Positions 1 to 27,315 are shown, counted from the stretch's first letter. The stretch is DNA of 64,000 nt from Trichosphaerium sp. ATCC 40318 (GCA_038496445.1 JALMLS010000531.1:186001-250000), one strand, 5' to 3'. The notes: a model not told the origin generated them from the sequence alone. A program made the numbers and translations.

Positions 1-3000
1 TTCGACTATGATCACACCTTCGACTGTTATGGTACCATCAACATTGGCGACACCATCAACAATACAGACGCCTTCAACAATAATAACGCCAACTGCAGTT
101 GTCAGCCCTTCAACAGTGAATGTTCCAGCAACGATGATCAACCCGTCAACAGTTCAGACGCCTTCAACCTTGGCAACTCCATCCACGATACAAACACCAT
201 CCACAGTGATAACGCCTTCTTCAGTTGTGAGTCCAGCGACTGTAAATGTTCCTTCAACAATGGTTAATCCTTCAACTGTGGTGACACCATCGACTTTGGC
301 AACTCCTTCAACAATCCAGACACCTTCAACGATTGTTGCCCCAAGTACCATTATCACTCCTTCAACAGTCAATGTACCTTCGACTGTTGTTACGCCATCT
401 AGTGTCGTAGCTCCTTCCACAGTGATTACACCGTCAACGATCATTACACCTTCGACTGTACAGACACCAAGGTAACCTCACAACATTAATCCCAGTTTAC
501 TTATCCTTTGTGTAGTACAATTCAAACACCTTCGACAGTAATCACGCCTTCATCAGTTGTAAGTCCAGCAACGGTTAACGTACCTTCAACAATGCTCAAT
601 CCATCAACTGTGATGACTCCTTCCACCTTGGCGACTCCTTCAACAATACAGACACCATCGACAGTGATCACACCTAGTGCTGTGCAAACGCCATCAACGT
701 TGAGTGTTCCTTCAACAGTAGTTACACCTTCTGCAATTCAGACACCTTCAACAATTGCAACACCTTCCACTATCGCAACACCATCTACTGTTCAGACACC
801 AAGGTACACAAACATCATTTTATGTAACATAAATTAACTTTATTGTAGTACAATACAAACTCCATCGACGATTATCACACCTTCATCTGTTGTGAGTCCA
901 TCAACAGTCAATGTTCCTTCAACGATGGTTAATCCATCAACTGTGATGACGCCTTCCACTTTGGCCACGCCTTCAACAATACAGACACCGTCTACGATCA
1001 TAACACCGAGTGCTGTACAAACACCATCTACGTTGAGTGTTCCTTCAACAGTAGTTACACCTTCAGCGATACAAACGCCGTCTACTATTGCAACACCTTC
1101 CACGATTGCAACGCCATCAACGGTGCAGACGCCAAGGCACGTAACTAATGAGATTTTACTTTATTAACTTGTTACTAGTACCATCCAAACACCTTCAACA
1201 ACGATCACACCATCTTCAGTTGTATCTCCGGCCACTGTCAATGTCCCATCGACAGTGATTACACCATCCACTATTATTACACCGTCAAGTGTTGCGACAC
1301 CTTCGACGATCCAGACACCATCAACAGTAATCACACCTTCCTCAGTCGTAAGTCCAGCAACAGTGAACGTGCCATCAACGATGATCACTCCATCTACAGT
1401 GATGGCTCCTTCAACATTGGCAACGCCTTCAACAATACAGACACCTTCTACGACTATAACACCAACAGCTGTTGTGAGCCCGGCCACTGTTAATGTGCCG
1501 TCAACAATGCTTACTCCTTCCGCTGTTGTTGTACCTTCGACAGTTGCAACTCCTTCAACAATTGTAGCCCCATCAACAGTTGTTACCCCGTCTACTATCA
1601 GCACACCGTCTACTGTACAAACTCCAAGGTAAGTAATAACTATCTAAGACAAACAAATGCACCTAACAACTTTGTAGTACGATACAGACACCAGCAACCA
1701 TAGTCACACCTTCCTCGGTAGTGAGTCCAGCAACAGTGAATGTACCTTCAACGATGATCACTCCTTCGACGGTGATGGTCCCTTCAACACAGGCAACGCC
1801 TTCCACTATTGCAACCCCTTCAACTATTGTGGCTCCTTCGACAGTGATCACCCCTTCAACAATAGTTGCACCGTCCACTGTGGTAACACCATCAACAATC
1901 AGCACTCCATCAACAACGATAACACCGAGTGCTGTGCAGACACCATCAACATTGAGCGTTCCTTCAACAGTTGTTACACCTTCAGCAATACAAACACCAT
2001 CGACAGTTGCAACACCTTCCACTATTGCAACGCCTTCTACAATTCAGACGCCTTCCACCATTGCAACACCTTCAACTATTCAAACACCAAGGTACGAATA
2101 ACAATGGTACCTATTTGAAATTAACTTTATTGTAGTACTATTCAGGCACCGTCCACGATTATTACACCTTCTTCAGTTGTTGGACCATCAACAGTCAATG
2201 TACCTTCGACTATGGTGACACCTTCAACGATTGCAACACCGTCTACGATAGTCAGTCCAGCTACAGTGGCTACTCCTTCGACTGTTAACGTTCCATCTAC
2301 AGTCCAAACACCAAGGTACTCTTCGTTAATCATCTCTAGAAAGCTCAATTTTTTGTTCAGTACCATTCAGACTCCTTCTACAATGATCACACCGTCATCA
2401 GTTGTGAGTCCAGCGACTCTCAATGTTCCTTCAACGATGGTTAATCCATCGACTGTGATAACACCATCGACTTTGGCAACTCCTTCAACAATCCAGACAC
2501 CTTCAACGATTGTTGCCCCAAGTACCATTATCACTCCTTCAACAGTCAATGTACCTTCGACTGTTGTTACGCCATCTAGTGTCATAGCTCCTTCCACAGT
2601 GATTACACCGTCAACGATCATGACACCTTCGACTGTACAGACACCAAGGTACCTCACAACGGAGTAATCTCAGTTTACTTATCCTTTGTGTAGTACAATT
2701 CAAACACCTTCAACAGTAATCACGCCTTCATCAGTTGTAAGTCCAGCAACGGTTAACGTACCTTCAACAATGGTTAATCCATCAACTGTGATGACTCCTT
2801 CTACATTGGCAACACCTTCAACAATACAGACACCATCGACAGTGATCACACCTAGTGCTGTACAGACACCATCAACGTTGAGTGTTCCATCAACAGTAGT
2901 TACACCTTCAGCGATACAGACTCCTTCGACTGTTGCTACACCTTCTACTATTCAGACGCCATCAACAGTGCAGACGCCAAGGTATTTATAGAACACGTTT

Positions 3001-6000
3001 TTATTTGTTTGTATTAACTTGTTGCTAGTACCATCCAAACACCATCAACGACGATCACTCCATCTTCAGTTGTAACTCCATCAACAGTCAATGTACCATC
3101 GACTATGATCACTCCATCCACTGTAATGGTACCTTCAACATTGGCAACACCTTCAACGATACAGACGCCTTCAACAGTGATCACACCTTCTTCTGTTGTG
3201 AGCCCAGCGACAGTCAATGTTCCATCGACGATGATAACTCCATCAACTGTAATGACTCCCTCTACCTTGGCAACGCCGTCTACAATTCAGACACCTTCCA
3301 CAGTAGTCACACCGTCGTCAGTCGTTAGTCCTGCGACTGTGAATGTTCCTTCAACTATGGTTACACCTTCAACTGTAATGACACCATCAACCTTGGCAAC
3401 CCCTTCGACTATACAGACGCCATCAACAGTGATAACGCCTTCATCTGTTGTTAGTCCATCTACAGTGAATGTGCCTTCAACGATGATAACTCCATCAACA
3501 GTTATGACGCCATCTACTTTGGCAACACCGTCGACAATCCAAACACCGTCTACGATTATAACCCCAACGGCAGTAGTGAGTCCAGCTACAGTGAACGTGC
3601 CTTCCACAATGCTCAATCCGTCAACTGTGATGACTCCTTCCACATTGGCAACGCCATCTACGATTCAAACACCTTCTACAACAATAACTCCAACAGCGGT
3701 TGTGAGTCCTGCAACAGTCAACGTTCCATCGACAATGCTCACACCTTCAACTGTGAATGTACCTTCAACAGTTGCAACACCAGCAACAATCAGCACGCCA
3801 TCCACAGTTGTGACACCCTCAACAATTCAGGCACCTTCCACTCTTGTTGTACCTTCAACTGTTGTGACTCCATCAACTGTCCAGACACCATCGACAATAC
3901 AGACACCAAGGTACGCTTAACTATTCAAACAACGTATTATTTCTCTGATAAATTATTTTTGTAGTACAATACAGACACCGTCTACAACAATAACACCAAG
4001 TTCTGTTGTCAGTCCCGCAACGGTAAATGTACCTTCCACGATGATTACTCCATCAACTGTGATGACACCTTCCACATTGGCTACTCCTTCGACCATCCAG
4101 ACGCCATCAACAGTGATAACGCCTACAGCAGTGGTGAGTCCAGCAACAGTTAATGTTCCATCGACAATGATAACACCTTCATCTGTTGTTGTTCCATCAA
4201 CCGTTGCAACACCTGCAACTATCGCAACACCTGCCACAATTAATGCTCCTTCCACAATTGTGACACCATCAACGATAAATAGTCCAGCGACAGTTATTAC
4301 TCCATCAACAGTTAATGTCCCATCTACATTGATAACACCATCTACTGTTCAGACGCCATCAACGTTGGCAACACCTTCAACAATACAGACGCCTTCGACA
4401 GTGGTAACTCCGTCTTCAGTTGTGAGCCCTGCAACTACGAACGTACCTTCAACAATGATCACACCTTCAACTGTTATGACACCATCAACTTTGGCGACGC
4501 CTTCTACAATTCAGACACCATCAACTGTTATCACACCTTCTTCAGTTGTGAGTCCAGCGACAGTTAATGTACCTTCAACGATGATCACACCTTCTACGGT
4601 TATGGTACCTTCAACATTGGCGACACCATCCACGATACAAACGCCATCAACAGTTGTGACGCCATCCACAATAAGCGCGCCTTCCACTGTGATTACACCG
4701 TCAACGATAAATACACCAGCTACTGTTCAGACACCAAGGTACAAGTTTGTTATATAAGCTGTTTTCTAAAGTTCTCTGTTTAGTACAATCCAGACACCAT
4801 CAACAGTGGTCACACCTTCTTCGGTTGTGAGCCCATCAACGGTTAACGTGCCTTCTACTATGATCAATCCTTCAACTGTGATGACTCCATCCACATTGGC
4901 GACTCCTTCCACAATACAGACTCCATCTACGATCATAACACCGAGTGCTGTACAGACACCATCGACGTTGAGTGTTCCTTCGACTGTTGTCACACCTTCT
5001 GCGATACAAACACCATCTACCATTGCAACACCTTCCACTATTGCAACACCATCAACAGTACAGACGCCAAGGTATGTAGAGGTTTTAGGTTACCAGTTTT
5101 AACTTTTTGTTACTAGTACCATCCAAACACCGTCAACAACAATCACTCCATCTTCAGTTGTATCTCCGGCCACTGTCAATGTCCCATCGACAGTCATAAC
5201 ACCTGCATCCGTGGTTGTTCCATCAACTATTGCGACACCTTCGACGATCCAGACGCCATCAACAGTGATTGCACCAAGTTCAGTTGTCAGTCCTGCAACA
5301 GTGAATGTTCCTTCAACAATGGTTACGCCGTCCACAGTGATGACACCTTCCACATTGGCAACACCATCAACGATACAGACACCATCGACAGTGATCACAC
5401 CGAGCGCTGTACAGACACCATCAACGTTGAGTGTTCCTTCAACTGTTGTTACACCTTCTGCAATTCAGACACCTTCAACAATTGCAACACCTTCCACTAT
5501 CGCAACACCATCTACTGTTCAGACACCAAGGTACACAAATAACTATTTATGTAACACATAAATTAACTTTATTGTAGTACAATACAAACTCCATCGACGA
5601 TTATCACACCTTCGTCTGTTGTGAGTCCATCAACAGTGAATGTACCTTCAACGATGGTTAATCCTTCAACGGTAATGACACCTTCAACTTTGGCAACACC
5701 TTCAACGATACAGACACCATCTACGATCATCACACCTAGTGCTGTACAGACACCATCAACGTTGAGTGTTCCTTCGACTGTAGTTACACCTTCTGCAATA
5801 CAGACACCTTCAACAATTGCAACACCTTCCACTATCGTAACACCATCAACTGTGCAGACTCCAAGGCATGTGTAACATATTTATATTATTATTAACTTGT
5901 TGCTAGTACCATCCAAACGCCTGCAACAGCTATAACGCCGTCTTCAGTCGTGTCTCCAGCCACTGTTAATGTGCCATCGACAATGATCACACCTTCAACG

Positions 6001-7120
6001 GTAATGGTGCCTTCGACTTTGGCATCACCTTCAACAATACAGACACCATCTACACCAACGGCAGTTGTTACTCCATCAACGATCAATGTCCCTTCAACGA
6101 TGCTTACACCTTCATCAGTGATGGCCCCTTCAACCTTGGCTACCCCGTCAACTATTCAGACGCCATCGACTGTGATCACGCCTTCTTCAGTTGTGAGTCC
6201 AGCGACTGTAAATGTTCCTTCGACGATGATCACACCATCAACTGTGATGACACCTTCCTCACTGGCAACGCCTTCTACGATCCAAACACCATCCACTACA
6301 ATAACTCCAAGGTAATAATAGTAGTCATTTATTAAAATCACTAATGTCTTCGTAGTACTGTACAGACACCTTCTACAGTTGTAACACCATCGTCAGTTGT
6401 GAGTCCAGCAACTGTAAATGTTCCTTCAGCGATGATTACACCTTCAACTGTGATGGTACCTTCAACGCTGGCTACACCATCATCAATTGCAACACCAGCA
6501 ACGATAAATGCTCCGGCTACTGTAATCACACCTTCAACGATCAATGCCCCTTCGACAGTGATTACACCTTCCACTATTAACACTCCATCAACAGTACAAA
6601 CACCTTCAACTATCGCTACACCAAGGTACATTAGTCACAACCCCAGAGTCTAATTTCTCTAACACTTCCTTTAAAGCACAATTAATACACCTTCGACGAT
6701 TCTTACACCGTCATCTGTTGTATCACCTTCAACCTTGGTTACGCCATCAACGATTAGTGCACCTTCAACGTTGATTACGCCTTCTAGCGTAGTGACCCCT
6801 TCTGCTGTGTTTGTTCCATCTACGATGCAAACACCTTCGACTATAATGGCTCCATCAACAACAATAACACCAACAACCATCGTGACTCCCTCAACGATAA
6901 GTTCACCATCCACAATTATCACACCGTCGACAACCATAACACCTAGCACCACAGTAACACCTTCGACCATCAACGCACCCGCTACGGTAGTTACACCTTC
7001 GACTGTATTCACACCATCAACTGTGACCACTCCGTCTACAATCAACGCACCTGCGACAGTGTTGACTCCTTCGACGATAAACGTACCAGCGACTATACAG
7101 ACCCCATCAACTATAATCGC
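1..7120 (+). repeat. Coding tandem repeat: 18-nt/6-aa unit with a higher-order 7-unit (42-aa) block STIQTP-STVITP-SSVVSP-ATVNVP-STMITP-STVMTP-STLATP
   Basis: Directly visible in the translations; third codon positions vary strongly while the amino-acid pattern is kept. Confidence 0.95.
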
Positions 7121-8259
7121 ACCAGTCGCACCAACACAACCACCAACGTGTGTACCTCTCACAGAGCAACCATGTGATAACATTGGCTCGCTTCAATTCC
7201 TTGTGAACAAAATATACGCTGGAAATTGTAACATGCCTCTAAAGGGCACAGTACGTTATCCTTATCATCTACAATCCTCAAAAAACTAATATCTTAATAG
7301 CCTATATTCCAACAAAGGCTTCGCACTGCCAATTCATCTGATACTTCTAACTTCTGGGATCCTACAAGAGGTATTTTCCGTGCAGATTACGATCTTTTAG
7401 ATTTTGGACCATTGGTTGAACAAGTTGGCACTCTTTCAATCTCATCCAATAATCTATTCGCTGATGGAAATAACCTTGTCAGTGGCGTTATGATAGGCGA
7501 ATTTTCAGTAGACGTAGGCACGTGCCAAAAAAAATCCGCGAAATATTTCTTGCTTTTCTCATTTTATTTCCAGCTAAAGTTCAAGCTTCACTCCCTCTTG
7601 TCTCACTCATGATCCCTGGGTATGTTCATGCTTACTTTGATCACTGTCTAATTGCATTAAAAGGCCGCAGTTCACTGTAACATTTGTGGTGGAGGGTAGT
7701 AGAATACTCCCTCAAGGACAAGGTGAATCTCCAAATACTTATATTGGAAACACATTATTCCTACTTGGTTTTGAGGTATGTAGCCAAAGTAGATCATACT
7801 GTACCGTCAGCTTAACATCATTATTATTTAGCCTACAACTTCGAGCAGTACATGCTTTGGTACAATAGGATATCTTACTGCTGATCAATCGTTGGCTGGT
7901 CAATGTGACATGTGTGAAACTGGCTGTATGCCAAACAGTTGTCCAAACTTAGATTGTGCCACAGGTACGCTGCTTTTTTATTTACAAAGGTTTTGTCTGT
8001 ATATGCATTTCTAATCACCTTGGTCACAGGAGATTCCATGTCTCTACCATCATTCGATTTTGTTGAACAGTTCAGAGCAATTGCTGTTGACAGCTCAACA
8101 GATATGATCCAAGTTCTTCCAAACGGACCTTATCAAAGACATGTTACAAAGAATCCTACACGTGTACTAGTCACAGGTATGACATTGGTAGCTCTATTTA
8201 TAGATAAATACACAATTTTGTTGACATTCGCAGAAATAACATCAAAACTTAGGACCTAG
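1..8259 (+). CDS. Giant Ser/Thr/Pro/Val hexapeptide-repeat (mucin-like) protein, 5'-truncated by the window, with a Cys-containing non-repeat C-terminal region; multi-exon, 3' end ambiguous
   Basis: About 2,100 aa of [S/A][T/S]xx[T/V/S/A]P repeats become one frame after removing 15 introns of 41-54 nt: 472-515, 804-848, 1137-1178, 1629-1677, 2092-2135, 2316-2360, 2649-2693, 2982-3028, 3911-3964, 4739-4783, 5072-5116, 5531-5577, 5866-5906, 6312-6355, 6626-6676. The frame continues through further introns (7251-7300, 7518-7573, one near 7620-7663, 7776-7831, 7965-8029). It stops at 8257-8259 if the CAG acceptor at 8233 is used. Confidence 0.85.
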
Positions 8260-18766: not shown

Positions 18767-21700
18767 ATGGCGCGACCTACTCTCACAAAAGAAGAACTAG
18801 AACGCGCAATTAACTTTGATCTTCTTATAGTACGTCAAAGCGAAGCGTCACGTGATGTTTACCGTCTTTTTTAATAGAGTGTCGTACAAACAACTTTTCG
18901 AACTGATGAAATAAAAGCATGCCTACGGTGAGTACCGCCACAAATACTTGAACAACACCCTTGCGTTCTATTCCTAACCATTCTTTTCAGTTACTTGGGA
19001 CAATTACGAGGTTATAGCGGCGTGCGAAAGCACATTTTGTGCACAAGATTAATAAGTATTTTGGCGTTGAGAGTACGCCAATGTGATCAATCCATCATAA
19101 CAATAGAAGAGCTTTATGACATATGCCTCAAATGTGAAGAACTAAGGCACGTGCCACGCCCATTCTTTTCTCTGAAATGTAACAATCAACGTAGTAAACA
19201 AACAAGAAAAGGAAGAAGATACATGTTTTTGGGTTGTGACAGATACCCAAGACCAACACAACCTGATCGTAGACCTGCTCGACAAATATACACACCTCAG
19301 AGACAATATCATGTCCCAACGACTACAACAGTACCTGTTACGTTCACAAGTGGTAATGCATCAAATCTACCTCAATTCATACTGGACAAAGCATCAAAAC
19401 CTGATCCACGTGATCCTTTTCATGTTACAAACTCTAAAGTTGTTTTTTGGTTCAAAGTCAATAGCGCAGGAACACATCTCCATAAGTTTGTTAAACCTCA
19501 AAATTCTGGTGGCAAGCTTTATATACTAAGGTGTTTCAGTCATACACCTCTTCTTGATGAAGGTTACTGTCCTTGGCCACCATTATTGAGTCAAATCATT
19601 TTGAACAATACACTGTTGGAGTTTAAAAAAGTACGTGAAATCGGTGCATATTTTTCTCAACAAAATCTCCACTTAGACTTCAGCTCATTACTTAAAACTA
19701 CTTTTTTTTTGGTCTCTCACATAACTTTCAAGTAACCAATACTTTTAATCATAACAATACCCAAAACAAGAGCCATGATTTATCAAACTTAAATTTTGAA
19801 AAAAAAGTTGGTTTTTTTGACTTTGTGCAAGCTTTTGGTTTAATTTCTCACTTCTAGGGTGAATGTCTGGAACTTAATCATCTCCGTGAAGGAAATAATT
19901 CTTTTACTGTTGGCGGATTCTTTCCAAGGGTACGATACAAAGTTTTTTCCAATTTTGAATAAAAAATCAATAAAGTCTTTTTTCTAACTTTTGTAGCCGT
20001 GGTATGGCGTGATGCAAGAATTTACAAGACCTTCTGTAGATTCTTTATGCCGAGGTTTACGTCAACTGTCATTTGAGGAAAGCAAGAATCAAGGTAAGCA
20101 TAACAAAGCTTGGTTAGTAAAAAGTATTAATTAACACTTATCCCAAGTTCGACTATCGTTTAACAACACATGTGGTATCGAGGAGGTTGAGCGTAAAGTT
20201 GCTTTAATTGATCCACTTGGATTAGGACGTATAACAATACCTGGCCGTGGGACACATTGCAGACATGTTAAGGTACGTATTCTGGAGACAACTCAAGCAA
20301 CCAAAAAAATCGGATTATGTTGTCAGTGTTGCACTTGATGTACTGCGCCGATTAAGCTATTTATAGTTCTAATGTGTTCATTAGTGTTTTGATGTTCGTA
20401 TATGGCTTGAGATGAATAAACGTTCAAACACTTGGAAATGCCCTATTTGCTCGAAGAGTTTACTTTTAAATCAAGTGGTAGTAGATTCTTACTTTGTCAA
20501 AATATTAAACGATGTCACTGATAATGAAGTCACAATACGTCCAGATGGTAACTATGATACTAAACCTGCTGCACAAGCGCATGTTATTGATAGCGATGAT
20601 GAAGACAATGACAACGACGGATCTAACAATAAACCATCAAAATGTGTTACAATTGACTTAACACTTGATGACAGTGACAACGAAGATGACATGATGATAG
20701 TAGATGATCAACAAGACATGAACGAAGTAAATAGAAAAGCCAGACTAGGTATACTTCAAAGTATACTTCAAAAGGGGGACTTAAACAACAACGACGGCTT
20801 AGAAGCTTTAGCTGCTGTTGCTGAAAGCGAAAAAGAAATTAATGACAGTAATCAAGCTCAAGAAATCCCGACGCCTGGTCAGACACAATCTCATCGTTCT
20901 GTGTATGATGAGACGCTCGACAATGCTGATTATCTGCATTTGAAGAAGCTAAATCGTTCTATACAAGTATGCGACGATATTATACGAATGCAAAGAAAAA
21001 TCGCTGAGGAGAACCGTGAAACAGGTAAAGTGTTGTATACATTGGTAAATTATGGTGTTACTAAAAACCCTTGTAAGGTACTGAATCATCAGATGAAGCT
21101 TCAGAGGAAGATTCATCACAACCTCCTGAAGTGAGACGTTCAAATGGTTTGTCAGAAGATCCTGTAGCTGAAGATAAACAACAAGATAATGATGTTGAAG
21201 ATGAAGGTGACAAAGTCGAGGAAGATAGTAATAATGACGACGAAGATGAAAATGAAACGGTAGCTATGAGACTTGGAAGGTTAAGGCGAATTTCTAGAGA
21301 TTTAGTCGTGTCCTATGTTGAAGAAGATGACAATATTGAAAAATACAATATACTCCCAAAACATGATCAAGAGGAAATTGAACGTGGGTGGATTGAGCCT
21401 TTAGAGATTAGCACAAAAGATATAAGATATGTTTGTCATATTTGTGATGCAGGACCTATAGAGAAAAATGTTTGGGTTCAGCACACTACATCTCATAGAC
21501 ATGTTGGTAAAATACAAAAAAAGAGAACGTTCGAAGAACTTCAAGCTAAGAAAACTGTGATTGAGGAGCAAGTAGAATCATTCAAGAGAGATTGGGTAGC
21601 GAGAAGGCAAAAAAAATATGGTAATTGCATTGATTTTAGAGGTATTGTATTTGGTGGGCGTCTGCACAAGACATGGTACGACTTATTATTTTTCCAAATA

Positions 21701-22033
21701 AAGAAAAAAAACTCACGTGTTTCTACAAGGGGTATTTGTAAGGCTTGTTCATGGTATGGAGAAAAAAAATCTCTTATTACGCATTGTAAGTCGCAAGAAC
21801 ATAAAGACAACTTGATATCTTGGTTTGCAAAATCTCAGGGTAATAATAAACGTAAGAGACACAAAGACGATAACGAAGATTCTGAACCCAAAACGAAAAA
21901 AAAGAAAAGTTCTGAATCTGGTGAGGATCTTAGTTATATTCAAATAAGCTCCAGCAGTGATGAAGAGGATAATGTTTCTTTCAGTAGTAGTGGTAATGGT
22001 AGTGATTTTGATAGCTTTATACACCACACATAG
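18767..22033 (+). CDS. PIAS/Siz-type SP-RING (MIZ) SUMO E3 ligase with acidic SIM-like segments and two C-terminal C2H2 (matrin-like) zinc fingers
   Basis: VALIDPLGLGRITIPGRGTHCRHVK|CFDVRIWLEMNKRSNTWKCPICSK is an SP-RING; SAP-like N-terminus; VTIDLTLDDSD is SIM-like. An intron near 21024-21077 joins the last ORF, which has CHICD...HTTSHRH and CKACS...HCKSQEH. Confidence 0.85.
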
Positions 22034-22787
22034 GGTAAATCTTCACTTGTAAATACTTGTACAAACAGAAAAAAAAAACAACTACGATTCAAAGTAGAGA
22101 TGTGATTTACTTCCGTGTTGTTTGACTTAGAAATGTTGGTTGTCCTTAGTAATCTATCATAAGCACATTCATACAGACTTTTCGCTCACATACATGTGGA
22201 TACCAACCATTTCAAAACAAATACTACTTTATTTGCAACGCCGCTTCCTATTATTTTCTGATTGTTGCTAGCGCTTGGAAACCGTTACGGTACAAGACCA
22301 AAACTCTGAACATGTTTGTATATTCTCCCATGCGCTATAGTATAGGCTACATGAGCGTAAGACGTTGTAGCACTGACTCCTCAGCTAAAATATTCCCGTC
22401 ACAGTTGTTTATCATAGAATAGTCTTGTGAGGCAACTGTCGCAACATCCAGCAGCTTGGTGGCTAACGCGCTTAGACAATGCCTGAATAATTTTGCATTG
22501 AGTTTAAATAAGGTGCCTTTGCCAGGAGAAATTGATACTCAGAGCACCAAAAATGTACTGTAGATGGGTTGTAGTGGTCAGAAAGTTAACACAGCCAATT
22601 ACCCATTTGTTGTGACAAATCACAGTCCGCCCTTGCAGCGGTCTTGTGTATCCATTGTGAACAAGATTGTTGCTTGAATAAAACTAATTCGAGAAATGAG
22701 AGGCCTAATTAAGAGCTTTCTTTCCGCTTTAAGCAAGTGTAAAACTCAATTCACATTAAATTCACTTGTACGCACGCTGCTGAAGAA

Positions 22788-25700
22788 ATGTTTCCTTCCA
22801 AGGGACCTTTCTCAGAGGCTAGCTACGTCCCAGCGCCAGAAGGCACTCCTGGCCCACCGCAACCTTTAACACCGGCAGTTACAACTACCGCCGCTTATGA
22901 TGGTATAATTACATACCCTCAGTGATCCCTAATAGTAGTAGACCCTCAAATCGACGATGATCCAAAGTTATACGATGATAGAAGCGCTGCAAGTAGTTTT
23001 TCATCCCTCGCCACTCGCCTTTCACTTGTAGATGGGTTTATGGCCGAATCAGATCCAAACAAACCAAAAAAAAAGAAAAGTAATTACGCTCTCATTATAC
23101 GTACTAGCAAGTGCTAATAACATGGTAGCTGTTTTCTATGTAACTGGAGGCGCTTTGCTCGGTTTATTGCTAATAGGAATAATTGGCGCTTTTTGCTTTG
23201 TATACTTCACCGACAGTGCCCAACAAGACGGTACGGAAGAATTACTCAACGGAACTTCTAAACAACAGAAAATCGATATTGTCGCTTTGTTCGCACAAAA
23301 ACTGTTGTTTTTTAAAGCAACGCCGACGTTTGATGAATATTTTTGTAATTTGTCATAGATTTGAACGATCGAGCTAGAAACCTTCACGACAGAGTGGATT
23401 TCAACGCTGCATACCACCAAAACGAAACAGACAACCTTCATGATAAAGTAGACGAACATAAAGAACAATCAAACATAGCGCTTGCTAAATCGATAAACAA
23501 AGTACACGACGCTATGGATGATAAATTCTCACAAACAAATATGCGTGTTGATATCGAGTTGCACCGTACACACGTTCACTTCACCCACGAAGTAAACCGC
23601 ACACATATTATTATGAATAGACGATTTGAAGACACAAACAAGAAGATCGACGACGGTTTGAAGTCTGTTAATGATAAAATCGATACGGGATTAACAGTTG
23701 TTAACGAAAAAATCGATACAGGTTTAACAGATGTTAACAAAAAAATCGATACGGGATTAACAGATGTTAACGAAAAAGTCGATACAGGATTAACAGATGT
23801 TAACGAAAAAGTCGATACAGGTTTAACAGATGTTAACGAAAAAGTCGATACAGGTTTAACAGATGTTAACAAAAAAGTCGATGACGGTCTTAACACTGTT
23901 AACGATAGAATGACAACAGAGATTACAGCAACAACACAAAAAATAGACCAAGGGGTTGCTCAAGTTAATAATAAGATTGACACTGAAATCAACGAAACAA
24001 ACACTTATATGGCCGCAGAATTCGCAAAGAGACCACTTCGTACGTGATTTTTTTTTCTACTCGTTTTTTTTCTTTTTTCGTTTTTTTTTCGAAATCTCGA
24101 ATGTTTTATGCTTATTCCTCCTTCTAGCGTGTCCAATGCAGTGTGAGAACAATGGTTCTCCAGATACTCTTTGTAAAAGATGTATTGCTTGTAATCCTGG
24201 ATGGGGTGGAACACTTTGTGATCAACCTGAGAGTTGTGCTGCAAGATGCACTGCTGGCACAGCTCCATGTTCTTGTAAACGTGGTACTATGATACCTAAC
24301 ACATGTTTATGTGATTGTCCACCAGGATGGATCTCTCCTGATTGCTCTGGTACGTCTTAATCCATTAGCTTCCAAAAACAATTTTTTGTTGTTTCTGTTA
24401 TCCACAAAAAAACTTACATTGTCGCTTAGTGCAAGATACAACTGTTACATTGGCTACAAAGATTCAGTTCTTGCAACAACAATTAGACCTTGCGTTAGCT
24501 GAACAAAACACTCAAAAGAGATCTTTTGACGATGATATTATTAGACTACCACATCACTTGGGTAAGTCTACTGGTTTTTTTTGTTCTTCATCTTTGTTGC
24601 TGACAAAATCTTTTAGGTACTGGTATGTCAGCCCATACCAAGCTTACAGGAGTTCCCCTCATCCAATTCACGTATGACGAGGACGAAAGTAAAACTTGGA
24701 CTCCAGTAGCCGGAACAACTTACACCGTTCCTGCTGAAGCAGCTTTCAATCCAATCTTGGGTGGAAAGTATCACTCATCAACGGAAACAAAGGTTTATAT
24801 TGATGCCAATGAACTCATCAATGATATGCGATCCCAGTACGTTCTTTTTTATGTCCTTAACGATTGGAGAGTAGTAGATACGCTGAAGTCATTACTAACT
24901 TGTTGTGTTTTTTAGCAAGAATGGAGGATTACAACCTGTTGCTCCACAAGAAATGCTTGAATCAAGGGCTGTTGATATATACAACGCTTACTTCCACTCA
25001 AGTTACTTAACAGTTGTACAAGAGTCATTCAAATTATTTGAAATGAAACTCCCTATCAACACACCTAACAATGTACGTCTGACTACCTTGCAAAAAGTGT
25101 AAAAAAAAATTTGTTCCTTGAAGTTTTTCTTTTGCGTTAAGTGCTGGTGTGCTTACAAACTTCCTTAGATCAGGCAATATAGATTAAGACGACAAATTCG
25201 TAGAGCGTTTGCGAGTCTACCTACTGGTGATGACGCACTAACTTCTGATGCTTACAATCAATACAAATTCGTCTTTGATAAATTTGGTGTTAGATACATT
25301 ACAAACAGTGTTGAAGGAGGTATCTTGACCAGCTTAACAGCTGTTCAAAATGAGGTGAATGGTTTGCAAACTGCAACAGGAGGATTCACAGGTTATGATT
25401 GGTCAAAAACCCAGGCTTTAGCAATGCATAAGAGCTCTTTAAGTAGTACGTTGTTTAGATCCCTATTAATACATCTTGGTTTTAAGTCAAGCTTACTTTT
25501 CTTTTTAGAAAAGACAGGTTCTTTTGTGAACCAATTGTTCCGTAGCAACGTGAGACTACATAAGACACTTTGCGCTGGTGGTAATGCACCAGAACAAGTA
25601 GCATGTACACAAACAAATGGATGGACAGATTCTCTTTATAAAGCACCGTATGTTACCCACTTCGACTCTGGTAACATTGCAGAGCTCATTGAAGACAATG

Positions 25701-26528
25701 AGTTGAGAAAAACTTGGGAAGGCATGCTTAATAGATATGTACGTTTAAACGACTACCACGTGCACATATACTCATTTTGTCACGTGTTATAGATTGATGA
25801 ACTCATGGGAGATAAAGCTGAAGGATGTCCTGCTTGCGGTCAAGGTGGAACATGTACACCTGGTAATAACTACTGTACTTGCCGTCCTAACTGGGGTGGT
25901 GTTACTTGCTCTCGATGTACCAAAGGTTGGGAAGGAGCTGACTGTAATGTTCAAAAGTCTTCCTTGACTAGCACCCTACATACAAGTACGCACATTTGAC
26001 AGAGTCAACCAATTTGTTCTCTTCGTTTTCTTCTTTTTTGCTCACCTTTTTTTTTTCTTAAGTTACACATGTTAAGCCAGGAGCTGAACAACATCCTCAA
26101 GCAAAGTATGTCAATCTAGGATCTGTAGAAGATCGCTATTGTGTTAAAGTTGGTATGAGTCATAACTGTGGGGAAGAAGGAGCTAAGGTATTCCGGTGTA
26201 CTCTACACGTTGGACATACATGGACAGCTGAACTTGGTACGAAATTCTTTAACGAGTTTATCATCGCATCTCGCTAACATTTTTCTTCTTTTTTTTAGCC
26301 TACGAAGCAAAAACAAAGCGTGATATTGGCGAAATGTCAGACTATCAAGCTATTGTAGACTCTGAAAGTGAAGAAAATGATCAAGAAGAAGAAGAAGCGG
26401 ATGATACTATTGTATCAAAACGATTTTTATGGGGCAAAAAGAAGAAAAAGGGAAAAAAAAAATGGAGATGTGGTGGTTCTACAGTTACTTGTAGCTTCCG
26501 TTGTTACATCGGAAAACCACCACAGTAA
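22788..26528 (+). CDS. Type II membrane protein: TM, 11-residue coiled-coil stalk, EGF-like modules, MACPF-like domain, EGF-like modules, Cys-containing C-terminal domain; multi-exon
   Basis: TM segment VAVFYVTGGALLGLLLIGIIGAFCFVYF; DTGLTDVNEKV repeats; EGF-like CNPGWGGTLC, CDCPPGWISPDC and CTCRPNWGGVTC. MACPF-like motifs: FASLP...YKFVFDKFGVRYITNSVEGG, CAGG...WTDSLYKAP...IAELI. Confidence 0.8.
23640..23910 (+). repeat. 33-nt coding tandem repeat (hendecad, DTGLTDVNEKV)
   Basis: About 8 copies related to gatacaggtttaacagatgttaacgaaaaagtc; the central copies are nearly identical. Confidence 0.95.
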
Positions 26529-26895
26529 ATAAGGGTGCTGTTTATCATGCAGCATTACACTGAATGAGTTCATTTGGGCTCAATAGAGTAATACTCCAAA
26601 AACCCTTTTTTTTTACATTTAACATTATCAATAAAACAAACTTCAAAGTATTTATTTATTCCTTGTTGCTTTTTTTTATCGTATCAATCAGCCAATAGAG
26701 CCAAACATTGTTTGTTGGAAATTCTGCAATAAACAATAATGGAGAACGTCATAGTGTTTGAAATTAGCAGGACATGAGACAGTTGGCATCATGAGTTTTA
26801 TGAGCTGTCTACAAAAAAATTGACGAATTCCACTCCAGAGAGGTAAGCTCGCTAGGAGCATTCTACTTCCCACTGAGTAGCAAGAAGCTACAACT

Positions 26896-27315
26896 TTGTG
26901 TACAACTATTAGTTTGTTGAGTTACGATGAAAACTGTCCAGGAAGTGACAAACTGTGCAACACGAGTATTAGGCTATATGAACACATTCCTAAAAAGTCA
27001 CAAATCATCAAATATCTAGTTAATAACGCAACGGATGGCTTTACACAAGAACGACTACAGTACCTTATTAAAAACTACTATGAAACTGATCTACGATTTA
27101 TTTGGGAGAGCTACGAAAAGCTTTGCGCAAAAACGAACCAGACACCTCTAAACTTACTGAAAGACCATAGTCTATATGAACAAGCAACCTCATTTGGTGT
27201 TTCAGCGATTACAACCAGAATAAACGCTGAGAGGGATAAAATAGTACAAGGAGACTCTACACTTATTGAAGAAGCTAAAAAAGAGCGCCTGGAGTACTTG
27301 GTTGACAGATACTAA
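26896..27315 (+). CDS. Hypothetical protein (139-codon ORF, true start uncertain)
   Basis: Uninterrupted ORF with protein-like composition; no family recognised. Confidence 0.35.
   Translation: MCTTISLLSYDENCPGSDKLCNTSIRLYEHIPKKSQIIKYLVNNATDGFTQERLQYLIKNYYETDLRFIWESYEKLCAKTNQTPLNLLKDHSLYEQATSFGVSAITTRINAERDKIVQGDSTLIEEAKKERLEYLVDRY

Follow-up and report, generated by a model that had tools for sequence, protein, structure and literature searches.

A gene of 13 exons on the + strand of a 64,000-nucleotide (nt) stretch of DNA from Trichosphaerium sp. ATCC 40318 (JALMLS010000531.1:186001-250000, from a genome of 70 Mb; this whole stretch is called the window below, and positions are counted from its first letter) probably encodes a single membrane-anchored protein in which a divergent, perforin-like MACPF domain is borne on a long, predicted coiled-coil stalk. 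The gene extends from 22788 to 26528, with a joined frame open over 926 codons, and its product would comprise, from the N terminus onwards, a short cytosolic tail, one transmembrane (TM) segment, the stalk, EGF-like modules, a linker, the MACPF domain, a further EGF-like module and a small Cys-rich C-terminal region. In animal immunity and in several parasites, the chief pore-forming weapons are MACPF proteins, and it is an evolutionary question how and when phagocytic cells first came to have them tethered to their membranes. The family to which the window protein belongs is one of free-living amoebae, presumably bacterivorous, that branch near the base of the Heterolobosea.

An earlier note on the window had listed a tail, a TM segment, a stalk, EGF-like modules, a dibasic Lys-Arg (KR) pair and a MACPF domain between 22788 and 25990. 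All of these features were found where it had placed them or close by, and the gene itself appears to continue some 540 bases beyond the end proposed there, through two putative exons (26063-26236 and 26299-26528) that join in frame. That a single transcript unites these parts rests on the orthologues and on splice logic, both of which are set out below.

A divergent MACPF domain

The MACPF domain is spread over four exons (24617-25738, approximately residues 434-728). Because the frame stays open through intron 9, 25169-25738 could be searched as one stretch, a query that included 21 residues coded by this intron. The Pfam MACPF profile (PF01823) matched it with 23.9 bits (E 5.4e-5; cut-off 21.5; profile positions 45-213 of 214), and a six-frame scan of the genome for families returned MACPF with 23.3 bits at the same place. 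The domain named in the earlier note passes the Pfam cut-off narrowly, and an orthologue, P0002 (see below), passes it amply (55.2 bits, E 1.4e-14). When compared with the family signature (Y/W)-G-(T/S)-H-(F/Y)-x6-G-G, the window protein has F-G-V-R-Y-x6-G-G (25283-25321), with the spacing, the Gly at position 2, the aromatic residue at position 5 and the Gly pair kept, and positions 1, 3 and 4 changed. The orthologues have W-G-T-E-[YF]-x6-G-G, where only the His is lost, and the variant signature remarked on earlier, although present, is thus not a trait of the family. Kept in the window protein and its orthologues alike are the Gly pair, a C-A-G-G-N-A-P strand, and a W-x2-S-L-x3-P-Y segment that aligns with a helix-turn-helix of perforin.

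Among sequences of solved structures in the PDB, a profile of the family matched perforin-1 (3nsj, 7pag) with E 6e-8, C8 alpha with E 4e-4 and TgPLP1 with E 0.015, and the segment coded by exon 10 aligned to perforin-1 (3nsj) in the profile search. In the protein collection, the first matches outside the family were perforin-1-like fish proteins (E 2e-14), and the last profile search was dominated by fish perforins, since one perforin row sat in the profile. Neighbours proposed by a protein language model, with scores at the level of leads, were all MACPF clusters (C8 beta, C9, BRINP). The MACPF fold, a bent four-stranded sheet with two helical clusters, was modelled on the orthologue, not on the joined window protein: AlphaFold2 gave its MACPF-EGF segment a predicted local distance difference test (pLDDT) score of 63 overall, rising above 90 in the core sheet and helices, and the top 50 structures retrieved with this model by Foldseek were all of the MACPF/CDC type (best E 3e-9). 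VIA Z scores for the same model were 10.5 with TgPLP1 (190 residues, root-mean-square deviation 4.5), 10.2 with C8 beta, 8.9 with perforin, about 8 with MPEG1 and 6.5 with astrotactin-2. Together, the comparisons of sequence support a real but divergent MACPF domain, and membership of the superfamily, and the modelled structure agrees with this as far as an alignment made up mostly of perforins allows.

MACPF genes also occur on at least three other contigs of the genome (C117:36677-41268, C63:73772-74432 and C517:5160-7911; loci L001-L010). Two of these loci (L001 on C117 and L002 on C63) are canonical secreted MACPF proteins, with a signal peptide, a Y-G-T-H-[YF] signature and a Pro/Thr-rich linker, and on C117 MACPF matches lie on both strands within 5 kb.

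A small family in heterolobosean-type protists

A search of 1.84 billion representative proteins with a 190-residue piece of the MACPF domain yielded P0002 as the only true relative (E 1.9e-13), the other matches (P0001, with C2 repeats; P0003, with DUF285 repeats; P0004, a repeat protein) being repeat or low-complexity noise. P0002, from EukProt, is the complete open reading frame (ORF) of 788 amino acids (aa) of transcript GECH01005616.1, and GECH01000000 is the transcriptome of Pharyngomonas kirbyi (PMC5421314). Its layout comprises a 25-aa tail ending in N-N-K-K-K, a TM segment, about 190 aa of coiled-coil type, two EGF-like modules, a linker (..HHLGTG), the MACPF domain, an EGF-like module and a Cys-rich tail. 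A second relative, P0005 (766 aa, 61% identical to P0002), lies on an intron-free 2456-nt Logan contig of SRR26825228, and a 277-aa fragment from the Logan assembly, P0016, shares the layout of the other two. A scan of metagenome contigs gave 151 pattern matches and no relative among them, and a paralogue search of the Trichosphaerium genome gave no second copy of the gene. A small, undescribed family, encountered only in heterolobosean-type protists of deep branching (with three further members among billions of sequences), is thus well supported, and the literature on MACPF proteins of amoebae or Heterolobosea, or of those with an N-terminal TM segment, yielded no paper on a layout that combines a type II anchor, a long coiled-coil stalk and a MACPF domain.

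All three relatives have their parts in the same order as the window protein and on one ORF. They differ from it in a Ser/Asn-rich stalk with many NxS/T sites, unrelated in sequence to that of the window; in the signature W-G-T-E-Y; in the position of KR in the linker; in a tail with E-x-x-x-L-I and an acidic cluster; and in lacking the acidic/polybasic insert near the C terminus. Aligned to the window by tblastn, P0002 is colinear over 24130-25945, from the first EGF-like module to the last (E 1.5e-57). Identity exon by exon is 31-47%, and across the predicted exon junctions the two sequences stay colinear with a difference of 0-2 residues (as at junction 7/8, with 12 versus 12 residues, and at junction 10/11, with 11 versus 11). 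The P. kirbyi orthologue, derived from a transcript, has TM segment, stalk and MACPF domain on one ORF, which counters the possibility, raised from the outset, that these parts belong to separate transcripts in the window and supports their union on one.

Membrane anchor and stalk

The N-terminal tail (54 aa, coded by 22788-22902 and 23032-23079) ends in KKKK and is followed by one hydrophobic segment at residues 55-82, the only stretch of the protein with a Kyte-Doolittle peak higher than 1.4 (maximum 2.56 across 19 residues); hydropathy of the 926-aa model reveals neither an N-terminal signal peptide nor a second hydrophobic segment. Since KKKK lies on the N side of the TM segment, the positive-inside rule predicts the N terminus to be inside, and the segment is accordingly predicted to be a type II signal anchor (N-in/C-out), the 54 residues before it being cytosolic and those after it extracellular or lumenal. 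This agrees with the N-terminal tail and single TM segment of the earlier note, and an extracellular or lumenal location fits with the C-terminal part being rich in disulfide-type Cys and in NxS/T sites. Orthologues have the same pattern, acidic and then N-K-K-K, immediately before the TM segment. Residues 6-18 of the P0002 and P0005 tails read Y-E-x-R-R-L-I-N-E-E-D-E-S invariantly and are among the best-conserved stretches outside the head. They contain an acidic-dileucine motif of the form [DE]xxxL[LI] (E-x-x-x-L-I) and an acidic cluster, which we take to be a sorting signal of the endolysosomal type.

The stalk is coded by exon 4 (23359-24039), which contains a 33-base-pair tandem repeat (7.3 copies, 90% matches, 23666-23905; Tandem Repeats Finder). 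The corresponding 11-residue register spans the entire exon, hydrophobicity having a power of 266 at period 3.67, against a maximum of 64 in 500 shuffles, and nothing at period 3.5. Folded as three copies, residues 5-226 of the stalk formed an in-register parallel bundle with contacts every 3-4-4 residues (ipSAE 0.61 versus 0.00 for the best control; pLDDT 84-85; runs agreeing in at least 97% of contacts). An ipSAE at this level was attained by 21 of 30 proteins solved as same-chain pairs and by none of 23 solved as single chains, a calibration made with two copies, and the three-copy result supports self-association rather than a copy number. A coiled coil of parallel chains in register is therefore predicted for the stalk, which would span about 33 nm if each residue added 0.15 nm; its period and its three-copy fold support the coiled coil of some 200 aa with 11-residue repeats seen in the earlier note, here with a length of 227 aa. 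Below threshold, the stalk also matches the 11-mer families Apolipoprotein, ApoLp-III and Phasin in Pfam. An apolipoprotein-like, lipid-binding reading of the repeats was considered and rejected (43.8 bits against a cut-off of 90), and a coiled coil is preferred because the stalk lies directly outside the TM segment, the three-chain model is in register and the stalks of the orthologues are of the heptad type. The latter have a period of 3.55 (heptad-like), with an indel of 21 aa between P0002 and P0005. That sequence and length drift across species while the presence of a stalk is kept amounts to spacer-like behaviour, and the 90% identity of the repeat copies at the DNA level points to recent expansion; stalk length seems to evolve quickly.

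Gene structure and flanking sequence

All 12 introns have GT..AG boundaries, nine of them start with GTACG, and their lengths are 49-129 nt; splice signals are donor-like GTA[CA]G sites and pyrimidine-rich acceptors. Exon 1 (22788-22902) holds the start codon, the first ATG downstream of an in-frame stop, and the Pro-rich cytosolic tail (aa 1-39), and ends at a GT donor that sets its putative 3' boundary. Exon 2 (23032-23079; 48 nt), also putative, codes for an acidic and then polybasic juxtamembrane piece (..AESDPNKPKKKK), is bounded by AG and GT and restores the frame into exon 3 (23129-23230), which contains the single TM helix of the signal anchor (23131-23208). The 3' part of intron 1 (22903-23031) is open in the frame of exon 2 over 22936-23031, and an alternative intron of 33 nt (22903-22935), below the length of all the others in the gene, would make the cytosolic tail 32 residues longer. 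After the stalk of exon 4, exon 5 (24128-24349; 44% identity to P0002) codes for two EGF-like, Cys-rich modules with 14 Cys in EGF-like spacing, and exon 6 (24430-24561) for a 45-aa linker with a short helix, the T-Q-K-R/S-F site and a conserved ..HHLGTG at the entry to the MACPF domain, as read from its sequence. Exon 7 (24617-24836; 43% identity to P0002, tblastn colinear) contributes the N-terminal part of the MACPF domain and the beginning of insertion loop 1; exon 8 (24916-25072; 33% identity) the remainder of this loop and the second core strand; exon 9 (25169-25445; Pfam MACPF) the signature, the third core strand and the beginning of insertion loop 2; and exon 10 (25509-25738; 41% identity; Pfam MACPF profile positions 145-214) the fourth core strand with C-A-G-G-N-A-P, the W-x2-S-L-x3-P-Y helix-turn-helix and the last MACPF helix.

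Directly after the MACPF domain, exon 11 (25793-25985; 47% identity to P0002) codes for an EGF-like module matched by Pfam EGF_Teneurin with 25.1 bits against a cut-off of 24.3. The EGF-like modules named in the earlier note are borne out by Pfam for this exon, whereas for exon 5 all matches to EGF are weak and below the cut-off. An AlphaFold2 model of P0002 residues 250-788 from an eight-row alignment had a mean pLDDT of 38.9 and is usable only for the EGF region (pLDDT 70-88). Exon 12 (26063-26236), putative, with GT..AG boundaries and open in frame, would begin the small Cys-rich module at the C terminus and code for half of it (C-x8-C-x9-C, G-x-x-W). BLASTP found no significant alignment between it and the tail of P0002, though its Cys pattern resembles that of the orthologue tail. 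Exon 13 (26299-26528), likewise putative, open and in frame, would end the protein at the stop codon 26526-26528; its alignment to the P0002 tail reaches E 0.57 only, with C-x6-C-x3-C at the C terminus of both. In exon 13, an acidic stretch between two KR sites (T-K-R/D and S-K-R/F) is followed by K-rich KKKKKGKKK and then by C-x6-C-x3-C. The Pharyngomonas orthologue has no counterpart of the acidic/polybasic part, its tail leading directly into the same Cys motif; we place this insertion inside the C-terminal Cys module of the gene.

Elsewhere in the window, a + strand ORF upstream of the gene (21131-22033; 300 aa) is rich in acidic and basic residues and has Cys/His pairs, and another downstream (26896-27315) codes for 139 aa; neither matches a Pfam family at E 0.01. 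Positions 1-8000 stand out by a GC content of 0.43-0.45, versus about 0.37, and by a strong negative GC skew (-0.27 to -0.35).

Possible roles and alternatives

A cytosolic tail, a signal anchor, a long and drifting stalk and a disulfide-rich head suggest a receptor of the cell surface or phagosome, built so as to hold its head well away from its own membrane. The head, a relative of perforin, keeps loops of matched length, and the orthologue tails have the sorting-type motif described above. The role that we tentatively favour on these grounds, and hold to be possible if somewhat short of probable, is one in trans against foreign membranes in the phagocytic cup or phagosome. The protein would be a type II single-pass membrane glycoprotein of about 926 aa, whose stalk would keep the perforin-like head at a distance from the membrane that bears it, either at the cell surface or, equivalently in topology, in the phagosome lumen. 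There the head would meet the membrane of prey bacteria or other cells, bind to it and possibly insert its two 42-residue loops. This would be a task like that of MPEG1/perforin-2 but with the opposite membrane topology, and nothing in the evidence calls for proteolytic release.

Several observations weigh against this proposal. The MACPF score of the window is barely over threshold, and the alignment used for the AlphaFold2 model was three-quarters perforins, so that the MACPF fold was partly imposed by construction. Exons 1-2 and 12-13 are placed by splice signals, open frames and pattern resemblance only; no RNA sequencing runs were listed in a look-up for 22700-26600, and the protein collections searched do not contain the window's own protein. 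Its Pro-rich tail is without the dileucine motif of the orthologues. The insertion loops, matched in length (42 and 42 residues in the window protein, 43 and 38 in P0002), are about 10 residues shorter in the window than those of 32 perforins (52-57 and 45-50 residues). Their best 11-residue beta-moments (0.40/0.24 in the window protein, 0.34/0.35 in P0002 and 0.37/0.27 in P0005) are lower than after shuffling of the same loops and lie at the low end of the values for perforins, whose median is about 0.6, although this measure is crude and a few perforin paralogues score equally low. By the same measure, neither loop of the three proteins has an alternating hydrophobic/hydrophilic pattern. A dimeric or trimeric stalk, moreover, fits awkwardly with assembly of a ring of many subunits, and cellular location and target are purely a matter of inference.

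Loops that are short and weakly amphipathic disfavour canonical beta-barrel insertion, as far as so crude a measure can tell, and lead to the alternative that the protein is, in the manner of astrotactins or BRINPs, a receptor or adhesion protein of the cell surface without lytic activity, its head serving for binding (cell-cell, cell-substrate or prey) or endocytic trafficking and never forming a pore. We place this reading close behind the first, though as less likely than not. It draws on the loss of the signature His in all members (R in the window, E in the orthologues), on the endocytic-type motif in the orthologue tails, and on the loop moments, all six of which are at most 0.40, as are about 5 of 64 perforin values. 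Many receptors, such as scavenger receptor A and C-type lectin receptors, are likewise built of a type II anchor, a coiled-coil stalk and a head at the C terminus. Astrotactins, in addition, share the N-terminal anchor and the EGF-MACPF-EGF order (PMC4892435). Yet pore formers need loops matched in length, which astrotactin-2 lacks with its 19-residue loop 1 (PMC4892435), and the loops of the window protein, at 42 and 42 residues, are twice as long as that one and not degenerate by the criteria of the same study. The suggestion in the earlier note that the head may be non-lytic gains some independent support from the shortness of both loops and the lack of an alternating pattern. Also telling against a non-lytic protein of this kind are the retention of the Gly pair, the C-A-G-G strand and the W-x2-S-L-x3-P helix-turn-helix, the lack of FnIII or annexin-like domains, and the fact that the best matches in sequence and structure are lytic MACPF proteins (perforin-1, C8, C9, TgPLP1) and not astrotactin-2 (Z 6.5 versus 10.5).

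Another reading, which we consider unlikely, would reconcile a stalk of few chains with a ring-shaped pore: an inactive, stalk-tethered precursor would be cut by a convertase of the kexin/furin type after T-Q-K-R, freeing a soluble, EGF-less MACPF head to oligomerise on the target membrane. The site from which this idea arose is indeed present just before the MACPF domain (T-Q-K-R at 24510-24521, S-F at 24522-24527, in the 45-aa linker), and a KR pair lies in the linker of both lineages, albeit at different places. KR pairs are mildly over-represented in the protein, with 6 against an expected 2.5 (p 0.035 by shuffling), and four of the six lie at domain boundaries (aa 312 between stalk and EGF, 419 in the linker, and 857 and 891 flanking the acidic insert). 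The proprotein-convertase P domain (PF01483) is found at 44-53 bits in at least three loci of the genome (L014-L016, at C36:153211-153381, C188:94006-94185 and C27:38486-38665), which makes it probable that kexin/furin-type proteases exist in the organism, and proteolytic shedding has been proposed for membrane-tethered MPEG1 (PMC7593815). The three Pharyngomonas-type proteins, however, have their linker KR some 20-25 residues nearer the N terminus, as part of L-x-K-R-L-x-Y-L (A-T-K-I-Q-F-L in the window protein), and no dibasic site where the window has T-Q-K-R (they read S-A-S-K-G or A-K-G-G). Since the position is not conserved, cleavage at the release site proposed earlier is speculative. 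Besides, with Thr at P4 the site does not fit the furin motif R-x-K/R-R, a Pro follows the KR at aa 312, the KR of the orthologues is inside a predicted helix (in a part where the model is poor), and a dibasic pair is not rare in a 45-residue linker of such composition.

The gene model itself could be mis-joined, with a separate TM/coiled-coil gene that ends at a stop in a retained intron 4 next to a MACPF gene, or the locus could be a pseudogene. Retention of intron 4 would end the stalk ORF at 24045-24047, the stalk is without sequence similarity to that of the orthologues, and no RNA sequencing run is listed for the locus. We nevertheless hold this to be very improbable: the 13 exons join open and in frame with consensus signals, the codon at the stalk/EGF junction is the Pro of the conserved P-C that begins the EGF module, and TM segment, stalk and MACPF domain are on one ORF in three independent transcript-type relatives. 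A stand-alone MACPF part, though Cys-rich, would moreover have no start codon that leads into a signal peptide.

The boldest version of a trans-acting role, a "perforin on a pole", would have the 33-nm oligomeric stalk present perforin-like heads to the membranes of prey in the phagocytic cup or phagosome until convertase cleavage of the linker freed them to form pores, an independently evolved and topology-inverted counterpart of the MPEG1 of animals. We think this improbable as a whole; were it true, membrane-tethered perforins would be an ancient weapon of phagotrophic eukaryotes.

Comparison with known systems

Anchored MACPF proteins had been taken in the earlier note to be anchored at the C terminus, which overlooks the astrotactins, vertebrate-specific membrane proteins with an N-terminal anchor, EGF repeats before the MACPF domain and one EGF after it (PMC4892435). 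Astrotactin-1/2 (PDB 5J67) and the window protein have in common the N-terminal anchor, a bulk that is, or in the window protein is predicted to be, outside or lumenal, and the EGF-MACPF-EGF order (exons 5, 7-10 and 11 in the window). They differ in that astrotactins have two TM helices around a cytosolic domain and no coiled-coil stalk, whereas the window protein has one TM segment and a stalk of 227 aa; in the FnIII and annexin-like domains that follow EGF-4 in astrotactins, none of which Pfam finds in exons 12-13; in loop 1 of astrotactin-2, which is mismatched with its loop 2; and in the VIA Z score of astrotactin-2 with the orthologue model, lower than those of lytic MACPF proteins.

MPEG1/perforin-2 is likewise a membrane-tethered MACPF protein facing the extracellular or phagosomal side of a phagocytic cell, and has a small EGF-like linker after the MACPF domain, a tail that directs trafficking and a proposed shedding (PMC7593815). 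It is, however, of type I, with a signal peptide, the MACPF domain first, an MABP/P2 beta-prism, a C-terminal TM segment and no stalk (PMC7593815). The window protein has no MABP match in Pfam, and with its TM segment at residues 55-82 its predicted topology is opposite to that of MPEG1.

Perforin-1 and complement C6-C9, the best sequence-profile matches among solved structures, also have an EGF after the MACPF domain and share with the window protein the Gly pair, the W-x2-S-L-x3-P segment and the strands of the core. As soluble, secreted proteins they have neither membrane anchor nor stalk; they carry C2 or TSP/LDLRA domains, and their loops are about 10 residues longer and clearly amphipathic. 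In general build, a parallel is offered by type II coiled-coil-stalk receptors (such as class A scavenger receptor, CD23, langerin and the attachment proteins of paramyxoviruses), with a short cytosolic tail, a signal anchor, an oligomeric helical stalk and a C-terminal ligand-binding head. To our knowledge, the heads of these receptors are SRCR, C-type lectin or beta-propeller domains, never MACPF, and we know of no sequence relationship with the window protein. The latter is a member of the MACPF superfamily, yet not an astrotactin, MPEG1, a perforin or a complement protein. If its head is lytic, it would represent a second, independent way of keeping a perforin off its own membrane; if non-lytic, a protist parallel to the repurposed MACPF proteins of the astrotactin type, which have been thought to be specific to vertebrates.

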